Virus record (IMG/VR): IMGVR_UViG_3300017917_003143
Span: 279,633 to 343,632 of that record
Reading direction: 5' to 3' (one strand)
Length of the DNA stretch: 64,000 bases
The translations under genes were made by a program, and so were the position numbers. The first letter of the stretch is position 1; each line of letters begins with the position of its first letter. Under the pieces are notes generated by a model. It saw only the letters and a program-made list of their open reading frames with translations, was not told where the DNA came from and did not search any database. This document shows, one piece after another, positions 2,700-63,360 of this stretch.

Positions 2700-2708
2700 C
2701 GGTAAATA
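2699..2708 (+). promoter_or_regulatory. Late promoter motif (representative copy; many others listed in findings)
   Basis: GCGGTAAATA; TAAATA core as in T4 TATAAATA; 7 nt before portal ATG. Confidence 0.7.
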
Positions 2709-2715
2709 ATACACT

Positions 2716-4497
2716 ATGTCATGGAAAAAATATTTCAAAGTGGCCAACGTTTCGGGCCAGATGAGCCCTATTTCGGGCAACATACCCCGAGGGCCAAACT
2801 ACGGCACAGGATACGGAACAGACGGTCAAGCACAGACTGAATTCTCCTTCCGCAACTACGCCAGCCGACTGCCTGAAGTATATACAGGGCATCCCAATCG
2901 TTTGGAACGCTACAACCAATACGAAAACATGGACGGCGATTCAGAAATCAATGCCTGCCTTGACATTTTGGCCGAATTCAGCACACAGACCTGTGAATCA
3001 AACGGTACACCATTTGAGATAGATTTCAAAGAAAAACCCACAGATCACGAAGTAGACATCATCAAAAAACAGCTACAGCAGTGGGTCAAACTAAACAAAT
3101 TAGATCAACGTGTGTTTAAAATTTTCCGCAACACCATCAAGTATGGTGATCAGGTATTTGTGCGTGATCCAGAGACATTTGAGATGTACTGGGTGGACAT
3201 GACCAAAGTGGCCCGAGTGATCGTCAATGAGTCTGAAGGCAAACGTCCTGAGCAGTATGTTATCCGTGACATCAATCCCAATTTCCAGAGTCTGAGCATC
3301 GCTGCCAAGACTACAAATGATTACAACACACAACCACCATCGGGCGGTTATTCAGCACCCTACAATTACACAGCACCCAACGCACCTAACTCGTCGGGGC
3401 AGAGCCGTTTCCAGAAGTCTGTGAACGAAACCTGTATCGATGCCAAGCACGTGGTGCATCTCAGTCTGAGTGAAGGTCTTGATTACTACTGGCCATTTGG
3501 ACAATCTATCCTGGAGATGATTTTCAAAGTTTTCAAACAGAAAGAACTGCTTGAAGATGCTATCCTGATCTATCGTGTGCAACGTGCTCCAGAGCGCAGA
3601 GTATTCAAGATTGACGTGGGCAACATGCCTAGCCACTTGGCTATGCAGTTTGTTGAGCGTGTAAAAAACGAAATACATCAACGCCGTATTCCTAACCAAA
3701 CAGGTGGTAGCGCCAATATCATGGATGCTACATATAACCCACTGTCGATCAACGAAGACTACTTCTTTCCACAGACAGCTGACGGACGTGGATCATCAGT
3801 TGAAACCCTGCCCGGTGGTGAAAACTTAGGTCAGATTGATGACTTGAAATATTTCAACAACAAGATGTGCCGTGGTCTGCGTGTGCCCAGCAGTTACTTG
3901 CCCACAGGGCCAGATGATTCAGATCGTCCTATGAATGACGGTCGTGTTGGCACAGCACTCATACAAGAATACCGCTTTAATCAGTACTGTGAGCGTTTAC
4001 AGCGCCAGATTTGCCAGAAACTGGATGATGAATTCAAGATGTTCCTGCGCTGGAGAGGCTTTAACATTGACGCTGGTTTGTTTAATATTGAGTTTGCACC
4101 GCCACAAAATTTTGCCAGTTATCGTCAAGCAGAACTGGATACCACACGTATGACAGCGTTCCAGGGCTTGGAACAGTTGCCGTATATGAGCAAGCGTTTC
4201 TTGATGAAACGTTATCTTGGACTCAGCGAAGAAGAGATCAACGACAACGAACAGCTTTGGAAAGAAGAACGCGATCAACCCGACTTACAAACACAAAGCG
4301 GCCAGGATTTGCGTTCAGTTGGTATTAGCCCTGCAGACATTGAAGCAGATATTGGCGCTGGCGAAGAAATTGCTGCCGCTGGTGGGTCACCCGAAGGTGG
4401 TATCATGCCACCAGGTGGTGCCGCTCCTGTAGAGCCTGGCAGTGCCGCAGCCGGTGCTGGTCCTGCAGGTGGTGCCGCTCCTGTTCCAACAATCTAA
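2716..4497 (+). CDS. gp20: Portal protein (T4 gp20-like)
   Basis: LLEDAILIYRVQRAPERRVFKIDVGNMP, EDYFFP, TLPGGENLGQIDDLKYF motifs; first gene of the head module. Confidence 0.95.
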   Translation: MSWKKYFKVANVSGQMSPISGNIPRGPNYGTGYGTDGQAQTEFSFRNYASRLPEVYTGHPNRLERYNQYENMDGDSEINACLDILAEFSTQTCESNGTPFEIDFKEKPTDHEVDIIKKQLQQWVKLNKLDQRVFKIFRNTIKYGDQVFVRDPETFEMYWVDMTKVARVIVNESEGKRPEQYVIRDINPNFQSLSIAAKTTNDYNTQPPSGGYSAPYNYTAPNAPNSSGQSRFQKSVNETCIDAKHVVHLSLSEGLDYYWPFGQSILEMIFKVFKQKELLEDAILIYRVQRAPERRVFKIDVGNMPSHLAMQFVERVKNEIHQRRIPNQTGGSANIMDATYNPLSINEDYFFPQTADGRGSSVETLPGGENLGQIDDLKYFNNKMCRGLRVPSSYLPTGPDDSDRPMNDGRVGTALIQEYRFNQYCERLQRQICQKLDDEFKMFLRWRGFNIDAGLFNIEFAPPQNFASYRQAELDTTRMTAFQGLEQLPYMSKRFLMKRYLGLSEEEINDNEQLWKEERDQPDLQTQSGQDLRSVGISPADIEADIGAGEEIAAAGGSPEGGIMPPGGAAPVEPGSAAAGAGPAGGAAPVPTI

Positions 4498-4508
4498 TAA
4501 ATAATATT

Positions 4509-4727
4509 ATGTTGCTACTTGAGTTTTTCCATAAAGATCCTGCAGGTTATCAAGACGTTGAAGATGATAACTCACAGCCTCAGCTTGGCCAACTGCGCAA
4601 GACAAAACTCACACTACGCCAGATCAACAAACTGCGTAGAATGAATGATGTGCGTACCTTTGAGTACAAAGAAAAACTCAAAGATGTGCGCAAGCAATAT
4701 CAACCACCTGCCGCACCAGCACTGTAA
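4509..4727 (+). CDS. Small hypothetical protein in head module
   Basis: 72 aa ORF with basic C-terminus; TAAATA 5 nt before its ATG. Confidence 0.7.
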   Translation: MLLLEFFHKDPAGYQDVEDDNSQPQLGQLRKTKLTLRQINKLRRMNDVRTFEYKEKLKDVRKQYQPPAAPAL

Positions 4728-4742
4728 AGCAGGTCTTATCTC

Positions 4743-4770
4743 GGTAGAATGTTCATTTTCTACCACTTTT
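4743..4770 (+). terminator. Possible weak terminator hairpin
   Basis: GGTAGAA (4743-4749) / TTCTACC (4758-4764) followed by ACTTTT. Confidence 0.35.
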
Positions 4771-4840
4771 ACCCCATAAACCGCATAGATTTTGACGTGT
4801 GTCGTAAATATCACACAGAGCCATAACTTGGAGGAACCTC

Positions 4841-5680
4841 ATGAACAAATTTGAACAGCTCATTGAATACGTTATCAACGACGAAGAGCAAAAAGCTCGC
4901 GATCTTTTCCACGAGATCGTAGTTGAAAAAAGCCGCGGCATCTATGAAGAATTGATGGCCGAGGAAGAAATTGAAGAAGCCAAAGACGAAGAAGAACTCG
5001 ACGAAGCCAAAGACGAAGAATCTGATGAAGAAGAACTCGATGAAGCCAAGGACGAGGAAGAACTCGACGAAAGCATGATGGGTGAGATGGGCGGCGATCA
5101 AGCCGACGATCTTATTGACGACATTGAAACCGAAGAACAAGGTCTTTCAATGGAAGGCGAAGACGAAATGGCCGACGAAGAAGGCGGCGAAGATCTTGAA
5201 GATCGCGTAGTTGATCTTGAAGACAAACTTGACGAACTCATGGCAGAATTTGAAGCTCTTATGGGCGACGAAGGCCAAGAGGGCGAAGACGAAATGGACA
5301 TTGAAGTTGGTAGCGACGACGTCGAAACCGACGGCATGGGCGCTGGTGAAGAAGAAGAAATGGATTCTGAATTTGAAACCATGGAAGGTACTGAACTTGA
5401 AGAAGCTATCAATTTGAAAGCCGCTCCTGCTCCAGTTAAGTCTGAAGAAGGTAATATCAACAAGAAATCTACTGTTGCAGCCAACAGTGGTGCAAAGGGC
5501 ATGGATGGTAAGCCTGTAATGAGCGCAGACACACCTGAAAAAGGTCGTCCTGCTCCTACAGCCAAAGACTTGATTAGCGATGTGCAAAATGCTCCAGCAA
5601 AGAGCACAGTTAAACAAGGTCCTGCTACCAAGCCACATTTAGCACAGGCTACTGGTGTAAACACCAAGAGCCCTTACTAA
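4841..5680 (+). CDS. Acidic prohead core protein (gp67/gp68-like position)
   Basis: 279 aa, extremely Glu/Asp-rich with EEELDEAKD repeats; between portal and protease; GGAGG SD at 4830-4834. Confidence 0.7.
   Translation: MNKFEQLIEYVINDEEQKARDLFHEIVVEKSRGIYEELMAEEEIEEAKDEEELDEAKDEESDEEELDEAKDEEELDESMMGEMGGDQADDLIDDIETEEQGLSMEGEDEMADEEGGEDLEDRVVDLEDKLDELMAEFEALMGDEGQEGEDEMDIEVGSDDVETDGMGAGEEEEMDSEFETMEGTELEEAINLKAAPAPVKSEEGNINKKSTVAANSGAKGMDGKPVMSADTPEKGRPAPTAKDLISDVQNAPAKSTVKQGPATKPHLAQATGVNTKSPY
4963..5075 (+). repeat. Coding tandem repeat EEELDEAKD
   Basis: Near-identical gaagaactcga(c/t)gaagccaa(a/g)gacga units. Confidence 0.8.
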
Positions 5681-5697
5681 TAGGTTAGTTCAAGGTT

Positions 5698-6321
5698 ATG
5701 GCTCGTTACCTAAGAGAACACCTTACTTTTGACGCCGCTCGTATTGTACTCGAGGGCGCCGAAGGTAAGGACCTTTATATGAAAGGTATTTGTATCCAGG
5801 GTGGAGTCAAAAACGCCAACGAGCGTGTGTATCCGGTGAGTGAAATTGAAAAAGCTGTTCGTCAAATCAACGAACAGATCCAAGGTGGATACAGTGTTCT
5901 CGGTGAAGTTGATCACCCAGATGACCTTAAGATTAACTTAGATCGTTGCAGTCATATCATGACAGAAATGTGGATGGATGGCCCCAACGGATTTGGTAAG
6001 CTCAAGATTCTCCCAACACCAATGGGTAATTTGGTACGCACCATGCTTGAAAGTGGTGTGAAATTAGGAGTTTCAAGCCGCGGTAGCGGAAACGTTAACG
6101 AGGCCAATGGACATGTCAGTGATTTTGAAATTGTCACTGTCGATGTTGTTGCCCAACCCAGTGCGCCCAACGCATATCCAACAGCCGTATATGAAGGCTT
6201 GATGAACATGAAATATGGTCATCGAGTGTTAGAAATGGCCAAAGATGCTGGAGAGGACAGCAAGGTACAGAGATATTTGAGAGACGAGGTAACTCGCTTG
6301 ATCAAAGATCTCAAGATTTAG
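5698..6321 (+). CDS. gp21: Prohead protease (T4 gp21-like)
   Basis: NANERVYP, LGEVDHP, GKLKILPTPMG, LGVSSRGSG, DVVAQPSAP motifs. Confidence 0.95.
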   Translation: MARYLREHLTFDAARIVLEGAEGKDLYMKGICIQGGVKNANERVYPVSEIEKAVRQINEQIQGGYSVLGEVDHPDDLKINLDRCSHIMTEMWMDGPNGFGKLKILPTPMGNLVRTMLESGVKLGVSSRGSGNVNEANGHVSDFEIVTVDVVAQPSAPNAYPTAVYEGLMNMKYGHRVLEMAKDAGEDSKVQRYLRDEVTRLIKDLKI

Positions 6322-6330
6322 GAGAAACGC

Positions 6331-7419
6331 ATGCTAGATGCCATCAAACCGTTACTAGATAGCGACCTAATCAACGAGGAAACTCGTACAGCGATCTCAG
6401 AACAATGGGAACAAAAGCTGAACGAAGCTCGTGAGGTGGTACGTGCAGAACTCAGAGAAGAGTTTGCACAACGCTATGAGCATGACAAACAAGTGATGGT
6501 GGAAGCCCTAGATCGCATGGTAACAGAAGGTCTCGCCGCAGAGATCCAAGCTGTGCAAGCTGAAAAGCAAGCATTGGCCGAAGATCGCGTCAAGTTCAAT
6601 GTCAAGATGAAGGAATCAGCTACAAAGTTTAACGACTTTATGGTTTCTAAACTTGCAGAAGAAATTGGTGAACTGCGTAAAGATCGCAAAATTCACACAG
6701 AATCAATCCAGAAATTGGAAAGTTTTGTCGTGAAAGCTCTTGCTCAAGAAATCCGTGAATTCGCACAAGACAAGAAGGATGCGGTGGAAACCAAAGTCCG
6801 TTTAGTCCGTGAAGCTCGCAAACAGCTTGAGACATTGAAAGCACGTTTCGTAAAAGAAAGTGCTGACAAGATGAGCAAATCTGTAGCCAAGCATCTCAAG
6901 GCTGAACTTAGTCAACTCCACGAAGACATCAAAGTTGCTCGCGAGAACAATTTTGGTCGTCGTATCTTTGAAGCATACGCCGCTGAATTCGGTGCTACTC
7001 ACCTCAGTGAGAACGCAGAAATCCGTAAGCTCAACAGCGTTATTGCTGCCAAAGATCAGAAGTTGGCTGAAGCCATCAAGATCACCGAGAAGGCTAAAAC
7101 CCTCGTTGAATCAAAAGAACGCGAGATTCGCATAATCCGTGAATCCAATGAGCGAGCAAAGCTCATGGACGAACTGCTTGGACCTCTTAACGAGGAAAAG
7201 GCCGGTGTTATGAAGAATCTGCTAGAAAACGTTCAAACATCCCGTTTAAAGAACGCTTTCGAAAAATATTTGCCAGCTGTGCTCGCAGATAACAAACCAG
7301 CAAAAGCTAAGTCAGTGATTGCTGAGAGTGTTACTGAAGTCACTGGTGATAAATCTGCAAAGGTTGTAGCGGAAGATCGCAGTAATGTGATCGACCTTAA
7401 ACGCCTGGCAGGGCTTTAA
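6331..7419 (+). CDS. gp22: Prohead scaffold protein (T4 gp22-like)
   Basis: 362 aa coiled-coil, E/K-rich, between protease and capsid genes. Confidence 0.85.
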   Translation: MLDAIKPLLDSDLINEETRTAISEQWEQKLNEAREVVRAELREEFAQRYEHDKQVMVEALDRMVTEGLAAEIQAVQAEKQALAEDRVKFNVKMKESATKFNDFMVSKLAEEIGELRKDRKIHTESIQKLESFVVKALAQEIREFAQDKKDAVETKVRLVREARKQLETLKARFVKESADKMSKSVAKHLKAELSQLHEDIKVARENNFGRRIFEAYAAEFGATHLSENAEIRKLNSVIAAKDQKLAEAIKITEKAKTLVESKEREIRIIRESNERAKLMDELLGPLNEEKAGVMKNLLENVQTSRLKNAFEKYLPAVLADNKPAKAKSVIAESVTEVTGDKSAKVVAEDRSNVIDLKRLAGL

Positions 7420-7444
7420 TCTTAGGAAGGAAGAAGGAGACATT

Positions 7445-8647
7445 ATGTCACAAGAACTACTAGAAAGCCGTTGGGATGAGACCAAAGAAGCCCTACTCGA
7501 AGGCCTACAAGGTGCTCGTCGCTCAACCATGGGTGTTGTTTTAGAAAACACTCGCAAATACTTGAAAGAGAATGCTTCTGCAGGCTCAACAGTTTCAGGT
7601 AATATTGCAACATTAAACCGTGTGATCCTACCAGTGATTCGACGTGTTATGCCAACCGTTATCGCTAACGAGTTGGTTGGCGTTCAGCCAATGACAGGTC
7701 CAGTTGGACAGATCCACACATTACGTGTTCGTTATGCTCAGAGCTTGACAGACAACTCAGCCGCACAAACATCAGTTACAGCTGGTGAAGAAGCGTTGAG
7801 CCCATTCAAGATCGCTCAGGCATATTCGCGTCAAGTATCCGGTGTTGCTGGTGATACAGCTACCGAGTACACAGGTGCTAACACAGCAACTCTTGAAGGC
7901 AATGGTGGTCGTCAGATCTCTGTTCAAATCTTGAAGCAAGCTGTTGAAGCTAAGACACGTAAGCTACAAGCTCGTTGGACATTCGAAGCCGCGCAAGATG
8001 CACAAGCTATGCACGGTATCGATATCGAAGCTGAAATCATGGCAGCTCTTGCACAAGAAATTACTGCTGAAATTGACCAGGAGATTCTCCTGTCACTCCG
8101 CACTCTTGCAAGCACAGAGTTTACATACAACCAAGCTACCGTTTCAGGTACAGCTACATTCGTTGGTGACGAACACGCCGCATTGGCAGTTTTGATCAAC
8201 CGTGTTGCTAACTTGATCGCTCAGCGCACACGTCGTGGCGCTGGTAACTGGGCTGTTGTATCCCCAGCTTCATTGACTGTTCTACAGTCTGCAACAACTT
8301 CTGCTTTTGCACGTACAACAGAAGGCACATTCGAAGCACCTACAAACACCAAGTTTGTTGGTACATTGAACGGTGCTATGCGTGTGTTCTGCGACTCTTA
8401 TGCCGCAGACTCAACACCAGTTCTCGTTGGTTACAAAGGCGCAAGCGAAACTGATGCAGCCGCATTCTACTGCCCATACATCCCATTGATGTCAAGCGGT
8501 GTTGTGCTGGATCCAAGCACATTCGAGCCAGTCGTATCGTTCATGACACGTTACGGCTACATCGAACTCACAAACACAGCATCTTCATTCGGTAACGCCG
8601 GTGACTATGTTGGTGAGATTGCTGTTTCTAACTTGTCATTCTCTTAA
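7445..8647 (+). CDS. gp23: Major capsid protein (T4 gp23-like)
   Basis: LVGVQPMTGPVGQIHTLR, KTRKLQARWTFEAAQD, EITAEIDQEI, FYCPYIPL, FMTRYG motifs; strong SD and downstream terminator. Confidence 0.97.
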   Translation: MSQELLESRWDETKEALLEGLQGARRSTMGVVLENTRKYLKENASAGSTVSGNIATLNRVILPVIRRVMPTVIANELVGVQPMTGPVGQIHTLRVRYAQSLTDNSAAQTSVTAGEEALSPFKIAQAYSRQVSGVAGDTATEYTGANTATLEGNGGRQISVQILKQAVEAKTRKLQARWTFEAAQDAQAMHGIDIEAEIMAALAQEITAEIDQEILLSLRTLASTEFTYNQATVSGTATFVGDEHAALAVLINRVANLIAQRTRRGAGNWAVVSPASLTVLQSATTSAFARTTEGTFEAPTNTKFVGTLNGAMRVFCDSYAADSTPVLVGYKGASETDAAAFYCPYIPLMSSGVVLDPSTFEPVVSFMTRYGYIELTNTASSFGNAGDYVGEIAVSNLSFS

Positions 8648-8671: not shown

Positions 8672-8699
8672 AAAAACCCGCTTCGGCGGGTTTTTGTTT
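8672..8699 (+). terminator. Rho-independent terminator after capsid gene
   Basis: AAAAACCCGC-TTCG-GCGGGTTTTT hairpin with cUUCGg loop and U tract. Confidence 0.92.
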
Positions 8700-8716
8700 G
8701 GCCGCTAAATATTATC

Positions 8717-8857
8717 ATGATTGCACGTATTAACTTTGGATTAGGAATGCCGGCGGCTCGTCCACAAGCACCCATAGGCAATCCTATCGGGCATACAGTT
8801 CCACAAACACTGCCTCGCCCAGCAGTACATAACTTGATAGTAAAAACAAATGGCTAA
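8717..8857 (+). CDS. 46-aa small ORF (missed by track)
   Basis: MIARINFGLGMPAARPQAPIGNPIGHTVPQTLPRPAVHNLIVKTNG; TAAATA 5 nt upstream; stop overlaps next ATG. Confidence 0.5.
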   Translation: MIARINFGLGMPAARPQAPIGNPIGHTVPQTLPRPAVHNLIVKTNG

Positions 8858-9215
8858 TCCACCTCCACCATATGCAGACATCACTGGCATCAGCCGTACA
8901 GTGATGAAAGACAACGCACAAGAATCATTGGCCAACTACGATGGCAATGCCAGACCCGCAGAGTTCACAGTTGATCAAACCACAAGTAATGTTTACATTG
9001 GTAATGCCACAGGTAATTTGACACAAGTTTGGTCACCCACCGTGGCGATATTTCCTGTGTACACAACTTCTGCGGCTGCTAATCTTGTAGGATCTATAGG
9101 ACAAGCGATCTGTATCAGCGACAGTGCCCAAGGCAGTGACCCCGACGGAATGCTGGCATTTTGGGACACAACACACAATCGCTGGAGTTACGTACACAAC
9201 AATCAAGCAGTATAA
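8850..9215 (+). CDS. Hypothetical virion protein
   Basis: 121 aa; C-terminal module resembles the C-terminus of fibre 21568-25248. Confidence 0.65.
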   Translation: MANPPPPYADITGISRTVMKDNAQESLANYDGNARPAEFTVDQTTSNVYIGNATGNLTQVWSPTVAIFPVYTTSAAANLVGSIGQAICISDSAQGSDPDGMLAFWDTTHNRWSYVHNNQAV

Positions 9216-9223
9216 GTATTGCC

Positions 9224-10288
9224 ATGCAAGACTTGCATTGGCGATATAATTTCAATACAACAAAATTTGACTTTATTGAAAACAATCCACACCAGCATTA
9301 TGAACCACTGCTGAAGCACGTCTACGTGCCCACCTTGGTCATTGATATCAATTTGGTATCTGCCCAGTCATTGGACAAGTACATCAAAAAAGTTTTAGAT
9401 CTTGCTATAGAGCATCGTATTTCTTACCAGCAGATAATATTTGATGGCACACAAGATCCGGTCAATGATTACGCTACCAAAGTCAAAGTTCTTGATCTGT
9501 TTGCCCAGACAGCAGGAATAAAATGCTATTTCGCATTGAGCCAGTTTGATCTACAGACACACCCTTGTCTGGTAGAAATAAACTATCCAAGCTGGTTGTT
9601 TGTGTTCAAAAAACAATCACTGCCTGATTGGAACACAGCCCAGCGCACACACAAATTCAGCTGTCTCAATCGCAATCCTACATTCCATAGATTGATTTTT
9701 TACACCATGATCAAGCAACAAGGTCTGCTGGATGATTTTGTGTATAGTTTCTACAATCGCTGTCCCTATCAAGGACACTTGATAAATCCTATGAAGTATC
9801 GTGGGATTGAAAATTTGGTTGACAGCGACCTTGCACGACAATGCATAGAAAGTTTACAAGACTTTCCGATCAGCTGGGACAACGAAGTGTTAGGTGTCAA
9901 CGATCATTCCATCATGCACCCAGCCTACTCAGATACCTGGTGTAACATAGTGACCGAGACTTCGGCAATCACCAGCTTTACCAGCGAAAAAATTTGGAAA
10001 CCCATGGCCGCTGGACAACTGTTTTTTGTAGTAGGCGCACCCGGAACCTGTGCCTGGTTGAAAAAATTAGGATTCCATACCTTTGATGATGACTACGATT
10101 TCAAAATCAATCTCTCCAGCAGATTAAACATGGTAGTAGAGCGCATCAAAGAACACAGAGATGATGTTCCTGGATGGTGGAATCAGAACAAGTTCCATAT
10201 TGAACACAATTTCCATTGGTTGCGCAGTGGTAATGTAGAGAAAACCCTGCTTGACCCCATAGTAAATCAACTTAACCATAAATACTAG
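9224..10288 (+). CDS. Putative glycosyltransferase-like protein (GT10/GT-B-like C-terminal motif)
   Basis: Likely start ATG 9224 (TAAGTA 5 nt upstream). FSCLNR, NIVTET...FTSEKIWKP...LKKLGFHTF motif; paralog at 56157. Confidence 0.5.
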   Translation: MQDLHWRYNFNTTKFDFIENNPHQHYEPLLKHVYVPTLVIDINLVSAQSLDKYIKKVLDLAIEHRISYQQIIFDGTQDPVNDYATKVKVLDLFAQTAGIKCYFALSQFDLQTHPCLVEINYPSWLFVFKKQSLPDWNTAQRTHKFSCLNRNPTFHRLIFYTMIKQQGLLDDFVYSFYNRCPYQGHLINPMKYRGIENLVDSDLARQCIESLQDFPISWDNEVLGVNDHSIMHPAYSDTWCNIVTETSAITSFTSEKIWKPMAAGQLFFVVGAPGTCAWLKKLGFHTFDDDYDFKINLSSRLNMVVERIKEHRDDVPGWWNQNKFHIEHNFHWLRSGNVEKTLLDPIVNQLNHKY

Positions 10289-11266: not shown

Positions 11267-11854
11267 ATGACTACAGCATTTGTATTAGGCAACGGCCGCA
11301 GCCGACAAACAGTTGATCTTGAACAGCTCAAACAGCGTGGGCCAGTCTATGCTTGCAACGCTATCTACAGAGAGTTCACGCCCACTGTGCTTGTGGCCAC
11401 CGATCGGCCCATAGCAGAAGCCATACAAAATTCAGGCTACAGTTTGCAAAACAGATTCCACACACGTCAGCCACTGCCCAATCTAGGTGCCCTGCCGTTG
11501 GATTCAAGATATCGAGGATTTAGTTCTGGGCCCAATGCTGTGGCCCTGGCCTGCAAAGATGGATTCCAGCGTATTTTTATGTTGGGATTTGATCTTGGAA
11601 CTACAAACGGACAGTTCAACAATCTTTACGCTGACACAGAATTTTACAAAAAAAGTTCAGCGCCGCCTACATTCAGCGGAAACTGGGTGAAACAGATAGT
11701 GCAACTGGCCAACGAGTACTCGACCAGAGAATTTATACGGGTAATGGGCCCTGAATCAGCCATGATACCCAGTTTTAACAACATTAAAAATCTACGTGAG
11801 ATGGCAATTCTGGAATTCAAAGACCTGCTAAATACATCAAAAGGCTTGCTATGA
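11267..11854 (+). CDS. CstII/Maf(DUF115)-like Rossmann-fold transferase
   Basis: AFVLGNGRSR...VYACNAIY...VLVATD...SSGPNAVALA...GFQRIFMLGFD, echoing the GNGPS / CN / SG..A..LG...I.L.G.D pattern of GT42/Maf proteins. Confidence 0.55.
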   Translation: MTTAFVLGNGRSRQTVDLEQLKQRGPVYACNAIYREFTPTVLVATDRPIAEAIQNSGYSLQNRFHTRQPLPNLGALPLDSRYRGFSSGPNAVALACKDGFQRIFMLGFDLGTTNGQFNNLYADTEFYKKSSAPPTFSGNWVKQIVQLANEYSTREFIRVMGPESAMIPSFNNIKNLREMAILEFKDLLNTSKGLL

Positions 11855-13224: not shown

Positions 13225-13251
13225 ACCCATAAATACTAAAAAGGGTGATCA

Positions 13252-16200
13252 ATGGCGATTCAACGAGTTTCCGGCAACATTCTGCAGGACAACCTGCAAC
13301 GTGGTGCCAATCTAAGTATCCAGGGTAATTTAGCCTATTTTGACGTGGTTGATAACCGTGTGGGTATCAACACGAGCACACCCCTGCAAGATCTTTCGAT
13401 TGCTGGCAATCTTGGTGTTGGCAACTACATTGTTGTTGACGCTGAAGTTATTTCCAGTGCTGGCAATATTGTGTTGTTGCCCACAGGCAACGTCAGCGTA
13501 TCTAATGTTTACATACAAGATGTACTGGATCCTATCCAAGCACAAGATGCCGCTACAAAAAATTATGTTGACACATCATTAAGTTCATTCCTGACCTTTG
13601 AAGATGATGGTGCCAACACTACATCTATATCAGCTGGTGACACAGTATTCTTCAATGGCACAGCCAACGAAGTTTCAGTAGTGGTCAGCAGTCTGGCAGT
13701 GACTTTTGGTCTGCCTGATGATGTGATCGTTGGAAACTCATTGTCTGTCACTGGAAACTTTGATGCGGCCAATATCTACACCGGTGGTAACATTATCGCC
13801 ATAGGTAATATTGAAGGTGGTAATATTATTTCTGAAGGCGCCGTGATTGGCAACATACAGATCACAGGCAACATCACCGTCAACAATATTACCGTTTTAG
13901 GCAATACCACATCAAACAACGCCAGCATTGGAAACATACTCACAGTTGGTGGCAACATCACAGGTGGTAACTTGATATCCAACGCAGGTATCTATGGCAC
14001 CACAGCCAATGTCACAGGCAACGTATCAGTTGGTAACTTAACTATAACCAGCACCGCTGCCAACCGAGTGCTGTACACTGATGCTAATAAAAATATTACA
14101 ACCACTGCCAACTTCACCTTTGATGGTTCTCAGTTGGTACTCACAGGTACAGCCAATGTCAGTTCCAATGTGTTTGTTGGCAATCTCTATAGTGCGGCCT
14201 TGATCAATGCTGTAGGCAACATCACTGGATCCAATGTTATAGCCAACGGCAATGTCAATGGAAATTATGTCAACGTTACTAAGGATATCTATGCAGGCGG
14301 TAACGCTATCATTGATGGCAACTTGACAATCAATGGCGATCTGATTTATGAAAACGTCACTACACTAGCAGTTGAAGATCCAATCATCTCTTTGGGTCGT
14401 GGTGCTAACAACACTCCGTTGGTCAGCAATGATGGCAAGGACCGTGGTGAACAACTTTGGTATTATTCTGGCGCAGAAAAATCTGCGTTCATAGGGTATG
14501 ACAACTCGGCTGGCAACCTCATAGCCGCGGTAGATGTAACCATCGCCAACGAGATCGTTACAGTCAATCAGTATGGAACTTGGCAAGTTGGTAATATCTA
14601 TGCCCAAACTGCACTGATCACAGGCAATGTAAGTTTTGGAAATATTTCAACTCCAGGCCAGATATCAGCCACGGGCAACATCACCGGCGGTAATTTGATA
14701 TCCAACGCCATGGTATCAGCCGCTACCACAGTCAACGCCACGGGCAACGTCACGGGTGGTAACCTTGTTTCAAATGCGGCTATTTCTGCCGCGACTACTA
14801 TTTCTGCCACTGGTAATATCACTGGTGGCAACTTAATAAGCAACGCTAATATATCAGCATCGTCTGCTATCTTTGCCACAGGTAACATCACAGGTGGTAA
14901 TCTTGTAAGCAACGCTAATATTTCTGCCGCCAATGCTGTATTTGCTACAGGTAACATCACTGGTGGCAATTTGATATCCAACGCAGGTATCTTTGGAACC
15001 ACTGCTACCATAACTGGTAACATCATAGCTGGCAATGTTTCTACTCTGGGAGTAATCAACGTCACCGGCAATATCACCGGCGGTAACCTGATATCCAATG
15101 CCAACATATCGGCAACCAATGCTGTATTTGCTACCGGTAACGTCACTGCTGGTAATCTTGTAAGTAATGCTTCCATCTCGGCTGCTACAACAATCACAGC
15201 CGTGGGTAATATCACCGGCGGTAATCTTGTAAGCAACGCCAATATATCAGCCACTACCGCTGTATTTGCCACAGGTAACATCACTGGTGGTAATCTTGTT
15301 TCAAATGCCAATATATCAGCGGCATCGTTTATCTTTGCTACCGCTAATATAGTTGGTGGCAACCTAATATCCAATGCAAGAATAGTCGGAAATACTCTTG
15401 ACATTTATGGTGATGCACTGGTAGCTGGTAACTTGACTGTACAAGGAAACTTGACATACATCAACATTGATGATTTGAGAGTTGAGGATCCAATCATCCA
15501 GTTGGGTGGTGGTGCCAATGGTAATGCTTTGGTCACCAACGATGGTAAAGATCGTGGTACCCTACTGACCTATTACACCACAGGTCCTGGTAATGCGTTT
15601 GTTGGATGGGACAACAGTTCTGGTAACATGATTATTGCCAGCAACGTGAGCATAGCCAATGAAATTGTCACAGTCAATGCATATGGAACTTTCCAAGCTG
15701 GTAACATTTATGCTGAGAGTGCTGTCATAACAGGTAACACCAGCTTTGGTAATATTTCAACTCCAGGCCAGATATCAGCCACTGGTAACATCACTGGTGG
15801 TAACTTAATATCTAATGCCAACATATCAGCGGCATCTTTTGTATTTGCTACGGCCAACATTGTTGGTGGAAATCTCGTTTCCAATGCTAATATTTCTGCT
15901 ACCAATGCTGTGTTTGCCACAGGTAACATCACTGGTGGCAATTTGGTTTCAAATGCTTCCATTAGTGCGGCCACAACTATATCAGCCACAGGTAACATCA
16001 CTGGTGGTAATCTTGTATCCAATGCCGCAATATCTGCGGCCACTACAATCAATGCTACAGGTAACATCACAGGTGGTAATCTTGTAAGCAATGCCTCAAT
16101 CAGTGCGGCTACAACTATATCAGCTACTGGTAACATCACCGGTGGCAACATTGTGTCCAATGCTTTGGTAAGTGGAGCCAATGTACAGATTTCTACTCTG

Positions 16201-37591: not shown

Positions 37592-37632
37592 GGTCTCATC
37601 TCAGATAAATAATTGCATAATAGGAGAATGAT

Positions 37633-40269: not shown

Positions 40270-40285
40270 TGCGGTAAATACCCGC

Positions 40286-47143: not shown

Positions 47144-47343
47144 CCGCAGAAGAACTACAGAGACTCGCTGGTATAGGAGTTTATCGACCATATAACCTGC
47201 CTCCAACGGCAGGTTCTAACATCAGCATCACTGGCAATGAAAAAGGCGAGCTGATGAAAAAACACAACATCCAGCCAGGCACACCTGAGTGGTTCCAGTT
47301 ATGGTTCAGTAAGCCTTACTTGACTGGTGAGCATCCTCTTTGA
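47140..47343 (+). CDS. Small hypothetical protein (67 aa)
   Basis: ATGA-coupled; ELQRLAGI motif. Confidence 0.65.
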   Translation: MTAEELQRLAGIGVYRPYNLPPTAGSNISITGNEKGELMKKHNIQPGTPEWFQLWFSKPYLTGEHPL

Positions 47344-47851
47344 GACCCAAGTAAAGATTCCAGCTGGGGTGCCGTACACCGCGATAGGTGCTTTTCACAG
47401 AGTTGACCAAGGCCCAGTAGTTAGGCTTTACAGGAGCTTTGTTTGGCCTCCAGATCTTGTTGCCTTTTTCTGAGTTACACTCTTTACAGGCAGTGACACA
47501 GTTTTCCCACGTAGTGGTTCCGCCTTGTGCTCGAGGTAGCACATGATCGATGGTGAGTTCACGGCCGTTGAATGTTTCGTCGCAGTATTGGCAAGTGAAT
47601 AGATCTCGTAGATAAAGATTCTGCCTGCTGAATCGCATGCCGCCATTTTTGCCAAAACCTCGCTTGGTCACGGCCACAGCAGGGACTCGCATCTCCAGCT
47701 TGGCGCTTCGTACGACCCAATCATCATACCATTCTAACACTTGGATTTTGTCCAAGAAGAATAGTTTAACCGCTGTTTGCCAATCAATTGTGCTGAGTGG
47801 CAAGTAATTGACCGGTTGGTAGTCCGGTGCTAATATAAGGGTATCACTCAT
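47306..47851 (-). CDS. HNH endonuclease (McrA-like)
   Basis: RDLFTCQYC...LTIDHVLPRAQGG...WENCVTACKECNSEKG. Confidence 0.92.
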   Translation of the reverse strand: MSDTLILAPDYQPVNYLPLSTIDWQTAVKLFFLDKIQVLEWYDDWVVRSAKLEMRVPAVAVTKRGFGKNGGMRFSRQNLYLRDLFTCQYCDETFNGRELTIDHVLPRAQGGTTTWENCVTACKECNSEKGNKIWRPNKAPVKPNYWALVNSVKSTYRGVRHPSWNLYLGLKEDAHQSSKAY

Positions 47852-47889
47852 AAGAATATTTATATGCTAACATTTTGGTAAGTAATACT

Positions 47890-49455: not shown

Positions 49456-49468
49456 TAAATACATTACT

Positions 49469-50863
49469 ATGAGTCAATCAAACACTGCTTCCCAACAATT
49501 ATATGATCTATTAGTTTCGCGCGATTTTGAGCCCGAAGCACTGGACGCCGCTGGCAAACCCGCTGCCGACCCGGGCGAAGCAGATATCATCAGTTTTGAT
49601 TACAAGACACAGGAAAAAGATTACGGTACTGTGGTGCTGGTAATTGACGAAGAAAACAATCTTGATGTGTACTACGGCGACAACATGGGTCGCGCCATGG
49701 AAGGCGAAGACAAGGGAGACTGGTATGATTTCCTTTATCTCTTGCGTATGTTTGCCAAGCGCAATTTATTGACATTCAGCCTTAAAAATCTATCTCGACT
49801 CAAGTACAGCATGAGAACCATGGCCGCTGTCAAAGAGAGCTTGTTTGAAGGATACTACGGTAACCGCCGAGTCAGCTACAGCGATCAGCCCAACAAAGCA
49901 CGTTTGGTAATCAAACATAATCGCAATCTGGGTGAAGGTGATGCACGTTTCCGTCATATCGAAAGTTTGTTTGTAGAAAACGACAAGGGCGAACGATTCC
50001 GTGTACCATCGAAAAGTTTAATCGAAGGACGCATACTTGCTCGCCATGTAGCCGAAGGTGGCAATCCATACGATGCATTTGGTCAACACATATCTGAAAT
50101 GGTCAAAGATTTAAAAACATTGGCCAACTTCGTCAGAGTAGCCCGCCACAAAGATTACACAGGCGAAGCAAGCCACATGGTAGAAAGCGCCATCAAGCAT
50201 TACACAGAACTCAAAGCCAAAGCCAAGCGCATGATCAGTCGTCGTGGGTATCACGAAGCATTGGACAGTTTTGATCCGTCAGTAATCACACCAGTTGACG
50301 AAGCAGTTGAAACCATTAGAGAACTATTTGTACAGCAAACACTAGATCCTCGTGTAGAGCAGGCTTTGCCTGTGCTGGCCAGATTGCAAGAACAAGAAAC
50401 CATCATGAAAGAAGTAAATGATTTTGAGTCCTGGACCAATCAGATGATGGAAGGAACCTGGGCACTGGCAGATACACCTGAACTAGTAAAAAAACTACAG
50501 GATCTGATGAGCAAGGAACTCATAGTGGGTCCTGATGCTACCAATGCCACAGAACAATTATATGATCTCGTGGGAGACGATCAACTGTTTGACATACTTG
50601 ACGATATAGCTCAAGTCAATCCAGACGCCAATGCCTGGGATGATCCAAGAGTACAACAGAGACTGGCTCAATTAGGAGTGGCCATGCCCAGTGTAAATGC
50701 CCAAGCCGACTCTGATAAAGATCTTGATACCACTGATCTCAAAGAAGGATCGTGCAACATGACTCGTGAAGGTGTAGAATGTCCTGTACACGGAATGAAC
50801 GAATGTGGTATGTACGAATCTCGTGATTTAGAAAGAATCAAGACTCTCGCTGTAGTAAAATGA
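49469..50863 (+). CDS. Hypothetical late protein (464 aa)
   Basis: TAAATA 7 nt upstream; ends CPVHG...ERIKTLAVVK. Confidence 0.7.
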   Translation: MSQSNTASQQLYDLLVSRDFEPEALDAAGKPAADPGEADIISFDYKTQEKDYGTVVLVIDEENNLDVYYGDNMGRAMEGEDKGDWYDFLYLLRMFAKRNLLTFSLKNLSRLKYSMRTMAAVKESLFEGYYGNRRVSYSDQPNKARLVIKHNRNLGEGDARFRHIESLFVENDKGERFRVPSKSLIEGRILARHVAEGGNPYDAFGQHISEMVKDLKTLANFVRVARHKDYTGEASHMVESAIKHYTELKAKAKRMISRRGYHEALDSFDPSVITPVDEAVETIRELFVQQTLDPRVEQALPVLARLQEQETIMKEVNDFESWTNQMMEGTWALADTPELVKKLQDLMSKELIVGPDATNATEQLYDLVGDDQLFDILDDIAQVNPDANAWDDPRVQQRLAQLGVAMPSVNAQADSDKDLDTTDLKEGSCNMTREGVECPVHGMNECGMYESRDLERIKTLAVVK

Positions 50864-51435: not shown

Positions 51436-51964
51436 ACCGAGTTCCTAATCCTCTCATTACCTGATGTACTTTTGAATCAATATTGAGATTGATATAACCG
51501 TGGTTGGGTCGTATAGCGATCTCATGAGGGGGTTCCACATGCATGAATTCGACCCCGTGGCAGGGCTCATTGGAATCAGAATGCACATCTACATAAACTT
51601 GATATGTGACAACGATATCGGTAGCATCTGAGTGTGGCTGGCAACCAAAGTTAGGCAGATCCAACCAATATTTCACGACCATGAGATTTAGATCCTGTCC
51701 AGTGATCTCATTGAGTTTGGGTATGATATCCAATCCAATCTGCTGTAATCTTTCATAGTCGGCGCCAGGCTTTAACCATAGACGATGATGCGGCCTGGTG
51801 ACTTCGAATTCGTTGCCCTCATTGACTGTGATGTCCTGTAACCATTGTAAAGTCTCAGCCGAAAAGCACTGATCTACTTCCCAGCAGTTGGGAGCCACTG
51901 ATTCGATCAAACAAGTTTCGTCATAAATCTTGACTTGCTGTGCAGATGTGTTATACTGTGTCAT
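51401..51964 (-). CDS. 2OG-Fe(II) oxygenase-like protein
   Basis: WLD.PNF..QPHSD...YQVY...G.EF...N.GY.N.N...H; likely start ATG 51964. Confidence 0.65.
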   Translation of the reverse strand: MTQYNTSAQQVKIYDETCLIESVAPNCWEVDQCFSAETLQWLQDITVNEGNEFEVTRPHHRLWLKPGADYERLQQIGLDIIPKLNEITGQDLNLMVVKYWLDLPNFGCQPHSDATDIVVTYQVYVDVHSDSNEPCHGVEFMHVEPPHEIAIRPNHGYINLNIDSKVHQVMRGLGTRSSVVFQYNVCN

Positions 51965-52019
51965 ATGCTGATATTTAAGTACCAAATCGCATCTTCAGAA
52001 GAAAAATCACCTTTTGACG

Positions 52020-57954: not shown

Positions 57955-57962
57955 TATAAATA
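57955..57962 (+). promoter_or_regulatory. T4-type late promoter TATAAATA
   Basis: Exact T4 gp55 consensus, 5 nt before ATG 57968. Confidence 0.75.
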
Positions 57963-57967
57963 TGCAC

Positions 57968-58732
57968 ATGAACAAAATCGTATTGGTTACCGGGGGATTT
58001 GACCCTGTACATTCTGGACACATCGCGTATTTCAAAGCCGCACGAGCTCTCGGCGACACTCTAATCGTTGGATTAAATTCTGACGAATGGCTCGAGCGTA
58101 AAAAAGGACGTGCATTCATGCCATGGAATGAGCGTCTTTGCGTGATCAATAATCTATCCATGGTCGATGAAGTCTACACGTTTGATGATGAAGACGGATC
58201 AGCCCGACATTTTATACAACAGGTGCGGGCACACTATCCCATGGCTGAGCTGATATTTGCCAATGGTGGCGATCGCACAGACAAAAACATTCCTGAAATG
58301 GATGTTGTTGACCCCAATCTAAAATTTGTGTTTGGTGTGGGCGGATTCAACAAGGCCAACTCCAGTAGCTGGATACTGGAAGAATGGCGAGCACCAAAGA
58401 CAGAAAGACCTTGGGGGTATTATCGTGTGCTACATGAACCTAACAAAAATGTAAAACTAAAAGAGCTCACGGTCGAACCTGGCAAAACTCTCAGCATGCA
58501 ACGCCATGCTGATCGAGGAGAGCTTTGGTTTGTCAGCGAAGGCGAAGCTACGCTGTACACGATCAACCGAAAATCTGACGCAGAGCTACACGGTCGATAC
58601 ACACGCAATCAAATGATCGTAATCAATCGTCAAGAGTGGCATCAGCTGGCCAACGAAGGCACAGAACCTCTCAAAGTCATCGAAATACAATACGGTGATC
58701 GATGTGAGGAAAATGACATAGAACGACAATGA
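57968..58732 (+). CDS. HIGH-motif nucleotidyltransferase (TagD/RfaE-like) fused to cupin (mannose-6-phosphate isomerase type II-like)
   Basis: GGFDPVHSGH, VGLNSD, FANGGDR; then RPWG.Y.V, LSMQRH..R.E.W, IEIQYG...E.DIER. Confidence 0.88.
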   Translation: MNKIVLVTGGFDPVHSGHIAYFKAARALGDTLIVGLNSDEWLERKKGRAFMPWNERLCVINNLSMVDEVYTFDDEDGSARHFIQQVRAHYPMAELIFANGGDRTDKNIPEMDVVDPNLKFVFGVGGFNKANSSSWILEEWRAPKTERPWGYYRVLHEPNKNVKLKELTVEPGKTLSMQRHADRGELWFVSEGEATLYTINRKSDAELHGRYTRNQMIVINRQEWHQLANEGTEPLKVIEIQYGDRCEENDIERQ

Positions 58733-59415: not shown

Positions 59416-59416
59416 A

Positions 59417-61727: not shown

Positions 61728-62490
61728 CGAATACTGCCAATTCTTTCCTGGTGCCTTTGGCAGTCCAAATATAACTGTCAGGGTGCATGTTCCAATCAAT
61801 GTAAGACATAGGTAGTTGCCCATGCTGATATCGAGGAACGATAGGATCTAATACATCTTGATCCAACCCCCAGTAAACATAATCGCGCTCAAACCAAGAT
61901 TTTAATTCTTGTGCGTAATCTGACAGGAATTGTTGGCATGCAGGAGTAGCATTGAGCCAAAGGCCTCCTGCAAGGTATCTGGCACGTTTACCAGTGATGT
62001 GATGTATATAAAAATCGTGTGATTCATTGAGAGCAGGCACGCTCTTCCGTACCACAGCATCTACATCGATGGCCAATACTTGAGTGCGCCGATATAGGTC
62101 AGACAAACGAATGAATCTGGCACAAGCATAGTATGTTTTTTGCAGGCGCTCAATCACGCTACGATCATTGCCTTTGCCCATGGCGTTTAAAGTCCGATCA
62201 TAACGACTTTTTTCTGGCTCTGTGATGGGTACTTGTGCCCAACGCTGTGCGGCTGGTCTAAATAGATCTTCTGTGACGTGTTCCCAGGACACTGAAACTT
62301 TTTTCTCCTGACAAAAATCAATTTGATCGTTGCGTGGATTGAACAAGTGCAAATGTATGCTCAATTTTGTGTTGTGCTGGATACTGTTTATGAACGCATG
62401 ACCGAATTCATCAAAGTATTGTGAGTCACAAGCAGAGTAGACAAATAAATCTTGATGATGGCAGGTTCCGTGTAGCTCGGGTAACTTCAT
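61699..62490 (-). CDS. Putative GT-A nucleotide-sugar transferase
   Basis: Start ATG 62490; YYACARF, AIDVD (DxD), WGLDQD.L. Confidence 0.55.
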   Translation of the reverse strand: MKLPELHGTCHHQDLFVYSACDSQYFDEFGHAFINSIQHNTKLSIHLHLFNPRNDQIDFCQEKKVSVSWEHVTEDLFRPAAQRWAQVPITEPEKSRYDRTLNAMGKGNDRSVIERLQKTYYACARFIRLSDLYRRTQVLAIDVDAVVRKSVPALNESHDFYIHHITGKRARYLAGGLWLNATPACQQFLSDYAQELKSWFERDYVYWGLDQDVLDPIVPRYQHGQLPMSYIDWNMHPDSYIWTAKGTRKELAVFVNETARYKS

Positions 62491-62491
62491 A

Positions 62492-62505
62492 GTTAAATAT
62501 TTAAC
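62492..62505. promoter_or_regulatory. Palindromic bidirectional late promoter
   Basis: GTTAAATATTTAAC, a perfect 14-bp palindrome with TAAATA on both strands, between divergent ATGs 62490 and 62509. Confidence 0.75.
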
Positions 62506-62508
62506 CTT

Positions 62509-63360
62509 ATGATCATCGCCTATTTTCCAAAACAATGTGCCCAAAACAGTGGTCCTGTCTTGGAAGCCATGCTGGCCAGTTTGAAAGCCGCTGGCCACAC
62601 CTGTGTTGAAAACAGTTATGATGCAGATGCGGCCATCATATGGTCGGTGTTGTGGTCGGGACGCATGGCTCGCAATCATGAAGTCTGGGTGCGATATAGA
62701 GATGCCAAGAAGCCAGTGATCGTAGTAGATGTGGGTGCTTTGTATCGCGGCGAAACCTGGAAGATAGCGGTAAACTCGATCACGGCCAATGGCTATTATG
62801 GACACACAGAAAACCTGGATTGGGATCGCCCTAAAAAGTTAGGCATCAGCTTGGCCATCAACCTCAGTCGTAATCCCAGGATCGTCATTGCGGCACAGCA
62901 TGCCCGCAGTCTACAGGTGGCAGGTTTGGTTAGCATAGAAGGTTGGATCTGGTCTCAGGTGGAAGAACTTAGAAAGGTCACAGACAGGCCCATAGTGGTC
63001 AGACCTCATCCTAGGAGCCCGCTTGATAGCTCCATCCATATCCATTTGCCCAAGGATGTAATAATAGAACAGCCGCAGAAAATAGCCAACACCTACGACA
63101 GCTATAACTTGGCCTTTGATTGCCATGCCATGGTCAACCATAATTCAGGTCCTGGCATACAGGCTGCCTTGGCTGGAACCAGACCCATTGTGGATTCTAG
63201 CAGTCTAGCACACCCAGTCAGCATCCGCATAGAGGACATCGAACAGCCTTACACAGTAGATCGCGATCAGTGGCTGGTAGAAATATGCCACACAGAATAC
63301 ACAGTAGATGAAATAAAACAAGGGCGATGGATAGACCGCCTACAGCCAGGACTCAGATGA
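62509..63360 (+). CDS. KpsS/KpsC-like protein, paralog of 60819
   Basis: IVIAAQ, IVVRPHP, NSGPGIQAALAG, DR.QWL..I... Confidence 0.55.
   Translation: MIIAYFPKQCAQNSGPVLEAMLASLKAAGHTCVENSYDADAAIIWSVLWSGRMARNHEVWVRYRDAKKPVIVVDVGALYRGETWKIAVNSITANGYYGHTENLDWDRPKKLGISLAINLSRNPRIVIAAQHARSLQVAGLVSIEGWIWSQVEELRKVTDRPIVVRPHPRSPLDSSIHIHLPKDVIIEQPQKIANTYDSYNLAFDCHAMVNHNSGPGIQAALAGTRPIVDSSSLAHPVSIRIEDIEQPYTVDRDQWLVEICHTEYTVDEIKQGRWIDRLQPGLR

Follow-up and report, generated by a model that had tools for sequence, protein, structure and literature searches.

Late promoters of bacteriophage T4 are read by a sigma factor, gp55, through a -10-like box (TATAAATA) that spans -13 to -6 (PMC2988020), has no accompanying -35 element, occurs on both strands in front of virion genes and is avoided elsewhere in the genome. 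In this textbook system the promoter sits about one leader length (~25-30 nt) ahead of a gene led by a Shine-Dalgarno (SD) sequence. A related motif, ATAAATA, was predicted as the late promoter of the Rak2-like jumbo phages CBB and GAP32 (PMC5259590), which belong to the same supergroup as the phage studied here by major capsid, portal and gp55-like sigma, although its spacing to the start codon was not analysed. Leaderless mRNAs are known from other settings, i.e. the cI mRNA of lambda transcribed from PRM, with its 5'-terminal AUG translated without an SD (PMC10491246); the -10 motifs lying a few bp upstream of the ATG, with a specific spacing requirement and no SD, in Deinococcus-Thermus and other leaderless-rich bacteria (PMC12340547); and the middle/late transcripts of the large Thermus myovirus phiYS40, for which a link to initiation-factor balance was proposed (Sevostyanova et al. 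2007, as summarised in PMC3594737).

Here we analysed a 64,000-nt window (positions 279,633 to 343,632 of IMG/VR record IMGVR_UViG_3300017917_003143) of an uncultured freshwater, T4-related jumbo phage of 343,632 bp, together with the rest of its genome and its relatives. About half of its predicted T4-type late promoters lie 4-9 nt before the start codon with no SD, and many late genes are therefore probably expressed from leaderless mRNAs, an inference from sequence made without RNA 5'-end data; only head genes of relatives, as assembled contigs, were found in public RNA runs. The initial annotation had listed 13 TAA(A/G)TA motifs at a fixed short spacing from an ATG, none with a clear SD, and all 13 were confirmed. 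Expressed as d, the number of bases between the motif end and the ATG, eight sites have d=5 (4509, 8717, 9224, 34125 on the minus strand, 40286, 47851 on the minus strand, 47890 and 57968), four have d=7 (2716, 49469, and 51964 and 62490 on the minus strand) and one has d=9 (62509). None has a GGAG/GAGG/AGGA core in -16..-3, although this is partly forced because the motif occupies that space.

The enrichment is far beyond chance. In the whole genome the TAARTA-to-ATG histogram showed 23 occurrences at d=5 and 12 at d=7, against about 4 per other distance. Using motif-blind gene calls (our own simple ones), 31 genes carried the motif at d=4-9 against 2.84±1.63 (maximum 8) in 300 dinucleotide shuffles, and for d=5 alone the figures were 12 against 0.5; about 3 of the roughly 40 short-spaced sites are expected by chance. 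In an unbiased hexamer-by-offset count, TAAATA at offset 5 was the second commonest upstream word after AGGAGA. Of all TAAATA copies, 56% lie in the 6.8% of the genome that is intergenic, and 20 of 21 plus-strand copies in the window precede genes. TAAGTA is much less specific, with 18% of copies intergenic and only 3 of 12 plus-strand copies in the window preceding a gene.

Interestingly, the distance histogram is bimodal. About 40 sites lie at 4-9 nt (0 of 40 with an SD core), almost none at 10-15 nt, and about 41 at 16 nt or more, nearly all with an SD. The gap at d=10-15 was found in this genome, in G002 and in about 1 Mb of relatives. In 141 long-spaced sites of relatives the SD core never starts less than 5 nt after the motif (at 5 nt in 18 sites and at 6 nt in 20), although this boundary is not independent of the spacing gap. 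ATG is the start codon in 38 of 40 short-class genes against 162 of 199 SD genes (Fisher p=0.035), whereas 5'-end structure and A at +4 do not clearly differ from other genes.

Short-class promoters precede genes of several functions. The portal gene (phrog_213, E 1e-108) starts at 2716, 7 nt after TAAATA at 2703-2708 (element 2703-2718, plus strand), and the portal stop codon is directly followed by TAAATA at 4498-4503, 5 nt before the ATG at 4509 of a 72-aa ORF (4498-4511, plus). After the major capsid gene, a hairpin plus T-run at 8677-8695 (dG -9.8) is followed by TAAATA at 8706-8711 and, 5 nt later, the ATG at 8717 (8677-8719, plus), one of three such terminator-motif-ATG modules. The TAAGTA variant at 9213-9218 lies 5 nt before the ATG at 9224 of a 354-aa protein (9213-9226, plus), and TAAATA at 34131-34136 on the minus strand lies 5 nt before the ATG at 34125 of an HNH-endonuclease-like ORF (34123-34136; phrog_2255, E 3e-5). 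TAAATA at 40275-40280 precedes by 5 nt the ATG at 40286 (40275-40288, plus; 165 aa). A 38-bp divergent intergenic region (47849-47892) contains two back-to-back sites, TAAATA at 47857-47862 (minus) 5 nt before the HNH ATG at 47851 and TAAGTA at 47879-47884 (plus) 5 nt before the TerL ATG at 47890. The TerL stop codon is directly followed by TAAATA, 7 nt before the ATG at 49469 of a virion structural protein (49456-49471, plus). TAAATA at 51972-51977 (minus) lies 7 nt before the ATG at 51964 (51962-51977), and TATAAATA ending at 57962 lies 5 nt before the ATG at 57968 of a heptose kinase/adenylyltransferase-like gene (57957-57970, plus). Finally, an 18-bp divergent intergenic region (62488-62511) contains the palindrome TTAAATATTTAA, in which TAAATA at 62494-62499 (plus) lies 9 nt before the ATG at 62509 and TAAATA at 62498-62503 (minus) lies 7 nt before the ATG at 62490.

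The initial annotation had also claimed that genes likely needed in quantity carry the motif further upstream plus a strong SD, and this holds for the four genes concerned. The head operon (4841-8647, ending with the major capsid gene at 7445-8647) is preceded by TAAATA at 4805-4810 and 30 nt containing GGAGG before the ATG at 4841 (4805-4843, plus); gene 10369 has TAAATA at 10279-10284 (d=84) and AAGGAG; the probable sheath gene (1105 aa) has TAAATA and 32 nt with an SD before the ATG at 34228 (34190-34230, plus); and the tail tube gene (phrog_4542, E 6e-51) has TAAATA and 21 nt with TAGGAG before the ATG at 37633 (37606-37635, plus). Two minimal-leader promoters have d=16, one before the ATG at 11851 (11829-11853, plus), where the SD (AAGG) starts 7 nt after the motif, and one before the ATG at 13252 of a 1534-aa protein (13230-13254, plus), where it starts about 6 nt after the motif. 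Further leadered promoters with an SD were found between 17892 and 40814, with TAAATA at 17892 (d=27), 21541 (d=21), 25249 (d=17), 31807 (d=20) and 40789 (d=17) on the plus strand, and at 30303-30308 (d=19) on the minus strand.

The geometry is conserved gene by gene across 160 related environmental loci while the flanking sequence diverges. All 65 ortholog upstreams of the gene at 4509 have d=4-8, 67 of 69 of that at 49469 have d=4-7, 23 of 25 of that at 40286 have d=4-5, 4 of 4 of that at 9224 have d=5, and 7 of 7 of that at 51964 are short. For TerL, 30 of 69 ortholog upstreams are short, many of them TAAGTA. Among 61 distinct portal ortholog upstreams, 46 are short without an SD, the others having a 17-49 nt leader, mostly with an SD, on the same start codon (MSWK.../MA...); none has a spacing of 8-16 nt, and at least five short-long switches are forced on the portal tree. 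Conversely, 46 of 55 orthologs of the gene at 4841 have d=28-35 and all 55 have an SD, and the major capsid gene itself has an SD and no motif in 43 of 43.

A gp55-family late sigma factor is encoded 6 kb upstream of the window (genome 272941-273837; phrog_12791, E 1.3e-77; phrog_234, E 6.5e-23; tblastn against T4 gp55, E 2e-6), followed by gp47/gp46 homologues, which also lie near gene 55 in T4. As in T4, there is no -35-like conservation upstream of the core (nothing is conserved from -25 to -3). However, only the 6-nt core is invariant, the first two T4 positions are not conserved and TATAAATA occurs just 12 times in the genome. No T4-type gp45 clamp was detected with T4 gp45 by tblastn (E<=10) or with Pfam PF02916 (E<=1), a different clamp not being excluded; the activation mechanism may therefore differ from T4. 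The CBB paper reports no gp33 in that relative (PMC5259590). The initial annotation did not see that the spacing is a clade-specific departure from T4. T4 has no short class (mode about 28 nt), nor do the cultured relatives Vibrio phage 2.275.O, PA5oct and Serratia phage BF, whose motif lies 22-34 nt upstream with an SD. Orthologs in these phages have 26-31 nt leaders with an SD, e.g. the 49469 homologues of Vibrio phage 2.275.O and Serratia phage BF (d=26 and d=31). phiYS40 differs in infecting a host phylum in which leaderless genes are common anyway, in using host-sigma-type promoters and in having been shown experimentally; the Deinococcus-Thermus motifs are read by a cellular housekeeping sigma, whereas here two designs coexist within one promoter class and orthologs toggle between them; and lambda cI is a single regulatory gene of a temperate phage rather than dozens of late genes.

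We consider it most likely (probability about 0.75) that TAAATA is the -10-like core of late promoters read by host RNA polymerase carrying the phage gp55-family sigma, with transcription inferred to start at the 5th-6th base after the motif. On T4 geometry, d=5 puts the A of ATG at +1, so that short-class mRNAs (mode 5, then 7) would begin at the AUG or 1-4 nt before it and be translated by 5'-AUG (70S-type) initiation, although whether the 1-4 nt leader remaining at d=7-9 is translatable in the unknown host is uncertain. In the second design an SD is packed right at the predicted 5' end or a little further down. Spacings of 10-15 nt would give a leader too short for an SD plus spacer and too long for leaderless initiation. 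The two-tier scheme proposed in the initial annotation, with low-copy proteins made from leaderless mRNA, fits the annotations, although expression tiers are inferred: the short class holds the portal, TerL, two HNH endonucleases, the baseplate hub, a gp25-like wedge protein and several enzymes, while the SD class holds the head operon with the major capsid protein, the probable sheath, tube, adaptor and fibres.

Among alternatives, it is possible but unlikely that TAAATA is a late promoter serving genes further downstream, the abutting gene being translated mainly from read-through polycistronic mRNA by termination-reinitiation or 70S scanning, as described on unstructured RNA (PMC9031893), with the close spacing reflecting only genome compaction. 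Many short-class genes do lie 11-16 nt behind a co-oriented gene (e.g. 2716, 4509, 40286 and 49469), and in some TerL orthologs the motif overlaps the upstream stop codon, so read-through could contribute to their translation. Yet compaction alone would not forbid d=10-15 nor fix d at 4-7 across diverged relatives, divergent pairs and post-terminator sites have no upstream cistron to couple to, and an SD appears when the motif moves away in orthologs. We also regard as improbable that the motif acts in the RNA as an SD-independent translation enhancer or ribosome standby site. It is A/U-rich, at a fixed short distance from the ATG and without an SD, but the signal is one exact hexamer (single-base variants are 6-13% intergenic against 56% for TAAATA), is purged from coding sequence on the sense strand, matches the T4 late box in a phage with a gp55 homologue, and also lies 16-35 nt upstream of SD-led genes, which do not need an enhancer. 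An endonucleolytic processing site trimming long late transcripts is less likely still; primer-extension ends cannot distinguish initiation from processing, a caveat also made for T4 (PMC2988020), but no nuclease or structural context was identified, the promoter system is homologous to a known one, and the motif also occurs at divergent regions and directly after terminators, where a promoter is required anyway. An artefact of chance motifs plus mis-assigned start codons, suggested by the poor specificity of TAAGTA, by a few sites preceding GTG, TTG or ORF-internal codons and by the roughly 3 chance sites, is largely refuted by the about 11-fold enrichment and conservation in 60 or more distinct upstream sequences per gene; protein similarity to orthologs beginning at residues 1-3 and use of the same ATG by SD-led orthologs also speak against it.

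More speculatively, and in our view unlikely, this abundant clade may bias host ribosomes toward 5'-AUG / 70S-type initiation late in infection, a phage-programmed switch of translation-initiation mode. The phage itself encodes IF1, found in 8 of 8 clade genomes checked and absent from T4, Vibrio phage 2.275.O, PA5oct and Serratia phage BF, and the clade's putative initiation toolkit also comprises an initiator-like tRNA-Met with a C1xA72 mismatch, peptide deformylase and ribosomal protein bS21. The link is only clade-level, however, as phage Phosso has IF1 without the geometry, and bS21 and the initiator-like tRNA also occur in relatives that lack it.

The TAAATA-N4-7-ATG rule fixes start codons that SD-based gene finders miss or extend, e.g. 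TerL, whose ORF can be extended to an upstream TTG at 47875, and orthologs that toggle between 5-7 nt and about 21 nt plus an SD are natural spacing variants for studying how leaderless and SD initiation trade off. The T4 promoter type has here been moved hard against the start codon for dozens of genes, an arrangement kept by selection across a widespread environmental clade. It would mean that leaderless translation can carry a large share of a lytic programme in a phage whose other genes use strong SDs, one promoter class then giving two expression tiers simply through spacing, and it bears on why huge phages carry translation-initiation genes.

The genome is a 343,632-bp viral contig with a G+C content of 45% and an estimated completeness of 99%, the best DNA match being in a pond metagenome. 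Its final 64 kb (positions 279,633–343,632) carry the portal (phrog_213), the major capsid protein (phrog_138), TerL, the tail tube, the adaptor, fibres and other virion genes. No reference phage matched at the DNA level (megablast of 10 kb), although the capsid protein is 64–67% identical to those of Vibrio phage 2.275.O, Pseudomonas phage PA5oct, Sinorhizobium phage Phosso and Serratia phage BF, which belong to the T4-related 'Rak2-like' jumbo phages. Interestingly, a 298-amino-acid homologue of the T4 late sigma gp55 is encoded 6 kb upstream of the window (phrog_12791, E 1e-77; phrog_234, E 6e-23; tblastn against T4 gp55, E 2e-6), followed by gp47/gp46 homologues, which also lie near gene 55 in T4. 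A SegE-like GIY-YIG endonuclease lies next to gp46 (positions 4660–5094 of the stretch L011).

All 13 motif/ATG pairs reported in the initial annotation, which read them as implying leaderless late transcripts, were found exactly where it had placed them. Genome-wide, the distance from TAA(A/G)TA to the next ATG spiked at 5 nt (23 cases) and 7 nt (12 cases) over a background of about 4. Using our own motif-blind gene calls (405 genes, 93% coding), 31 genes had the motif 4–9 nt before the start, against 2.84 ± 1.63 (maximum 8) in 300 dinucleotide shuffles, and an unbiased hexamer-by-offset count placed TAAATA at offset 5 second only to the Shine-Dalgarno (SD) word AGGAGA. TAAATA was 56% intergenic in a genome that is only 6.8% intergenic, while its single-base variants were 6–13% intergenic, and 20 of its 21 plus-strand copies in the window precede genes. 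TAAGTA was far less specific, but is conserved in front of TerL orthologues: in many diverged lineages (loci L173–L252), as at 47879–47884 of the window, TerL uses this variant (GGTAAGTA, GATAAGTA or TATAAGTA) rather than TAAATA at d = 5 (d being the number of bases between motif and ATG), possibly representing a conserved weaker promoter.

The distance distribution was bimodal, with 34 TAAATA sites at 4–9 nt, 2 at 10–15 nt and about 32 at 16–27 nt. Counting both variants, about 40 'short' sites had no SD, while almost all of about 41 'long' sites had an SD between motif and ATG. Nothing was conserved upstream of the hexamer, as expected for a promoter without a −35 element. The T4 late box occupies −13 to −6 (PMC2988020), and the sixth base after the motif is therefore inferred to be +1, such that a 5-nt gap would make the A of ATG the first transcribed base. 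An internal calibration agrees with this, as in 141 long-class sites from relatives the SD core never began less than 5 nt after the motif and piled up at 5–6 nt (18 and 20 sites respectively), i.e. the shortest leaders would start with the SD, although this boundary is the same phenomenon as the 10–15 nt gap and not independent of it. Two divergent gene pairs are only 38 bp (HNH/TerL) and 18 bp (62490/62509) apart, each gene having its own motif and the second pair sharing the palindrome TTAAATATTTAA. Intrinsic terminators were found directly upstream of only 3 of 40 short-class sites, including 8717 behind the major capsid gene, and are hence not a general feature. Short-class genes started with ATG in 38 of 40 cases, against 162 of 199 for SD genes (p = 0.035). 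Weaker 5′ RNA structure in short-class genes was significant in only one of four window sizes, and A at +4 (50% against 38%) gave no firm distinction either.

Two scans of IMG/VR with the portal and TerL proteins returned 160 loci from many metagenomes, at 72–94% protein identity. The pooled histogram of the 80 portal loci (about 1 Mb) repeated the pattern, with 77 sites at d = 5, 37 at d = 7 and almost nothing from 8 to 15. The architecture was gene-specific and conserved while the flanks diverged: among distinct upstream sequences, 65 of 65 were short for orf4509, 67 of 69 for orf49469, 23 of 25 for orf40286 and 30 of 69 for TerL. For the portal, 46 of 61 were short without an SD, 14 were long (11 of them with an SD) and 1 had an SD and no motif. 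In contrast, the head-operon promoter (4841) had the motif at 28–35 nt in 46 of 55 sequences, all 55 with an SD, and the major capsid protein had an SD and no motif in 43 of 43. Short and long portal orthologues use the same start codon (MSWK... or MA...), which rules out mis-annotated starts. On a portal tree, well-supported branches force at least five short–long switches, and no portal orthologue had a spacing of 8–16 nt. The head genes (prohead core/protease, scaffold and capsid; window 4800–7900) have relatives at 90–95% nucleotide identity in estuary and freshwater metagenomes and in freshwater metatranscriptomes, with the highest depth over the capsid gene, and the clade is widespread and probably active in nature. 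However, the runs were all assembled contigs and the RNA runs contained only head genes of relatives, with little or no coverage of the portal region, nothing over the portal or orf4509 promoters and no 5′ pile-ups, and a second search on TerL/orf49469 returned no RNA run.

Whole-genome histograms showed the short class in this phage and in a complete relative, G002 (352,754 bp), but not in T4, Vibrio phage 2.275.O, PA5oct or Serratia phage BF, whose modes lie at 22–34 nt. Counts of TAAATA-N4-7-ATG against the reversed control extended this, as all eight clade genomes checked, this phage included, were enriched (34/13, 34/21, 33/16, 43/20, 36/19, 48/16, 40/10 and 22/3), while the four outgroups were not (16/20, 13/15, 39/58 and 15/49). 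The orthologous portal genes of Vibrio phage 2.275.O and T4 have the motif 30 and 28 nt upstream, respectively, with an SD, and the orf49469 homologues of 2.275.O and BF have it 26 and 31 nt upstream, also with an SD. The leadered state is therefore the general one, and the ATG-abutting state is a derived feature of this environmental clade.

Interestingly, the genome encodes several translation-related functions. A 72-amino-acid homologue of initiation factor IF1 (PF01176, 74.5 bits; genome 94279–94494, + strand; outside the window) has a probable TTG start, and its TAA stop codon forms the first three bases of the TAAATA promoter of the next gene (d = 5), an arrangement also seen in the genomes G001, G002, G005 and G012. 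Only 36 of 50,697 reference phage records have an IF1 homologue. IF1 was present in 8 of 8 clade genomes checked and absent from T4, Vibrio phage 2.275.O, PA5oct and Serratia phage BF, but was also found in Phosso, which showed no enrichment of the short spacing (8 against 6), so that this co-occurrence is suggestive only. The clade-level associations amount to a single evolutionary event. A ribosomal protein bS21 gene (PF01165, 61 bits; genome 38897–39109, + strand) with a TTG start and a strong SD (AAGGAGG) has TAAATA 30 nt upstream and is probably a late gene. We rejected bS21 as the factor linked to the leaderless geometry, as it is present in this phage, Vibrio phage 2.275.O and PA5oct but absent from G002, which has the geometry; it is also absent from BF and T4. 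The closest 'bacterial' bS21 matches (57–58%) were 5–11 kb contigs binned into Chitinophagales and Polynucleobacter MAGs from a single study, probably mis-binned phage fragments that do not allow a host to be called. One of three tRNA-Met(CAT) genes (genome 204409–204483) has the C1xA72 mismatch and A73 typical of bacterial initiator tRNA, but lacks the three G-C pairs in the anticodon stem; G002 has a copy with GGG/CCC, and PA5oct, which lacks the geometry, also has a C1xA72 tRNA-Met. This initiator-like tRNA is accompanied by 31 other tRNAs, the cluster of 32 (genome 188959–208566) including a tRNA with anticodon CTA, which would read the amber codon, and enclosing a permuted (two-piece) tmRNA gene (genome 203303–203716) with tag ANDEVYALAA. 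G002 has a similar tmRNA (ANDEQFALAA), which may hint at the host lineage. No IF3 or S1 domains were found. A functional link with the geometry is possible, since IF1 and extra initiator tRNA stimulate leaderless translation in vitro (PMC9031893), but it is not shown.

The short class comprises the portal, TerL, two HNH endonucleases, a baseplate hub/lysozyme, a gp25-like wedge protein, two virion proteins, a peptide deformylase, two radical-SAM proteins, a thymidylate synthase, a phosphoesterase, a heptose kinase-like protein and several small ORFs. The two HNH endonuclease genes (window 47306–47851 and 33778–34125, both on the minus strand) each have their own ATG-abutting promoter, one of them back-to-back with TerL in the 38-bp divergent region that is kept by the closest relatives (loci L173–L177). 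The peptide deformylase gene (phrog_2890, E 6e-42; genome 120685–121134) is itself behind a short-class promoter (d = 5), and both radical-SAM genes (genome 116677–117801 and 12446–13528) have the motif 4 nt before the start, one of them with a GTG start that is atypical for this class. The SD class comprises the head operon, the tube, the probable sheath, the adaptor, large fibre-like proteins and other virion proteins. In the absence of expression data, this fits the split between low-copy and bulk proteins proposed in the initial annotation, albeit with exceptions, since fibres are not bulk proteins.

A related late motif, ATAAATA, was previously predicted for CBB and GAP32 (PMC5259590), while PA5oct transcriptomics reported only sigma70-like promoters (PMC7318152). 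Leaderless middle/late mRNAs are documented for Thermus phage phiYS40 (PMC3594737) and −10 boxes adjacent to ORFs for Deinococcus-Thermus (PMC12340547), whereas phiKZ early and AR9 transcripts are leadered. Full-text searches found no report of leaderless transcripts from gp55-type promoters, and the novelty here therefore lies in the inferred occurrence of a known kind of leaderless arrangement at a known kind of late promoter.

We propose that the gp55-type holoenzyme opens at TAAATA and starts 5–6 nt downstream. Of the alternatives, i.e. read-through plus coupling, an RNA-level enhancer, a processing site or, least of all, an artefact, each fails on at least one of the following: the hexamer specificity, the forbidden gap, the divergent and post-terminator contexts, the appearance of an SD in long-spacing orthologues, or the shuffle statistics. 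In this model, which is inferred without mapped transcript 5′ ends, the RNA would begin with AUG where the gap is 4–5 nt and would carry a 1–4 nt stub where it is 7–9 nt, many d = 7 sites having a conserved A at the fifth base after the motif. Such RNAs lack any SD and would be read by 5′-AUG/70S initiation, which is generally less efficient than SD-led initiation in SD-using bacteria. Genes needing high output would keep an SD on a leader trimmed to the minimum, and spacings of 10–15 nt would be selected against because they serve neither mode.
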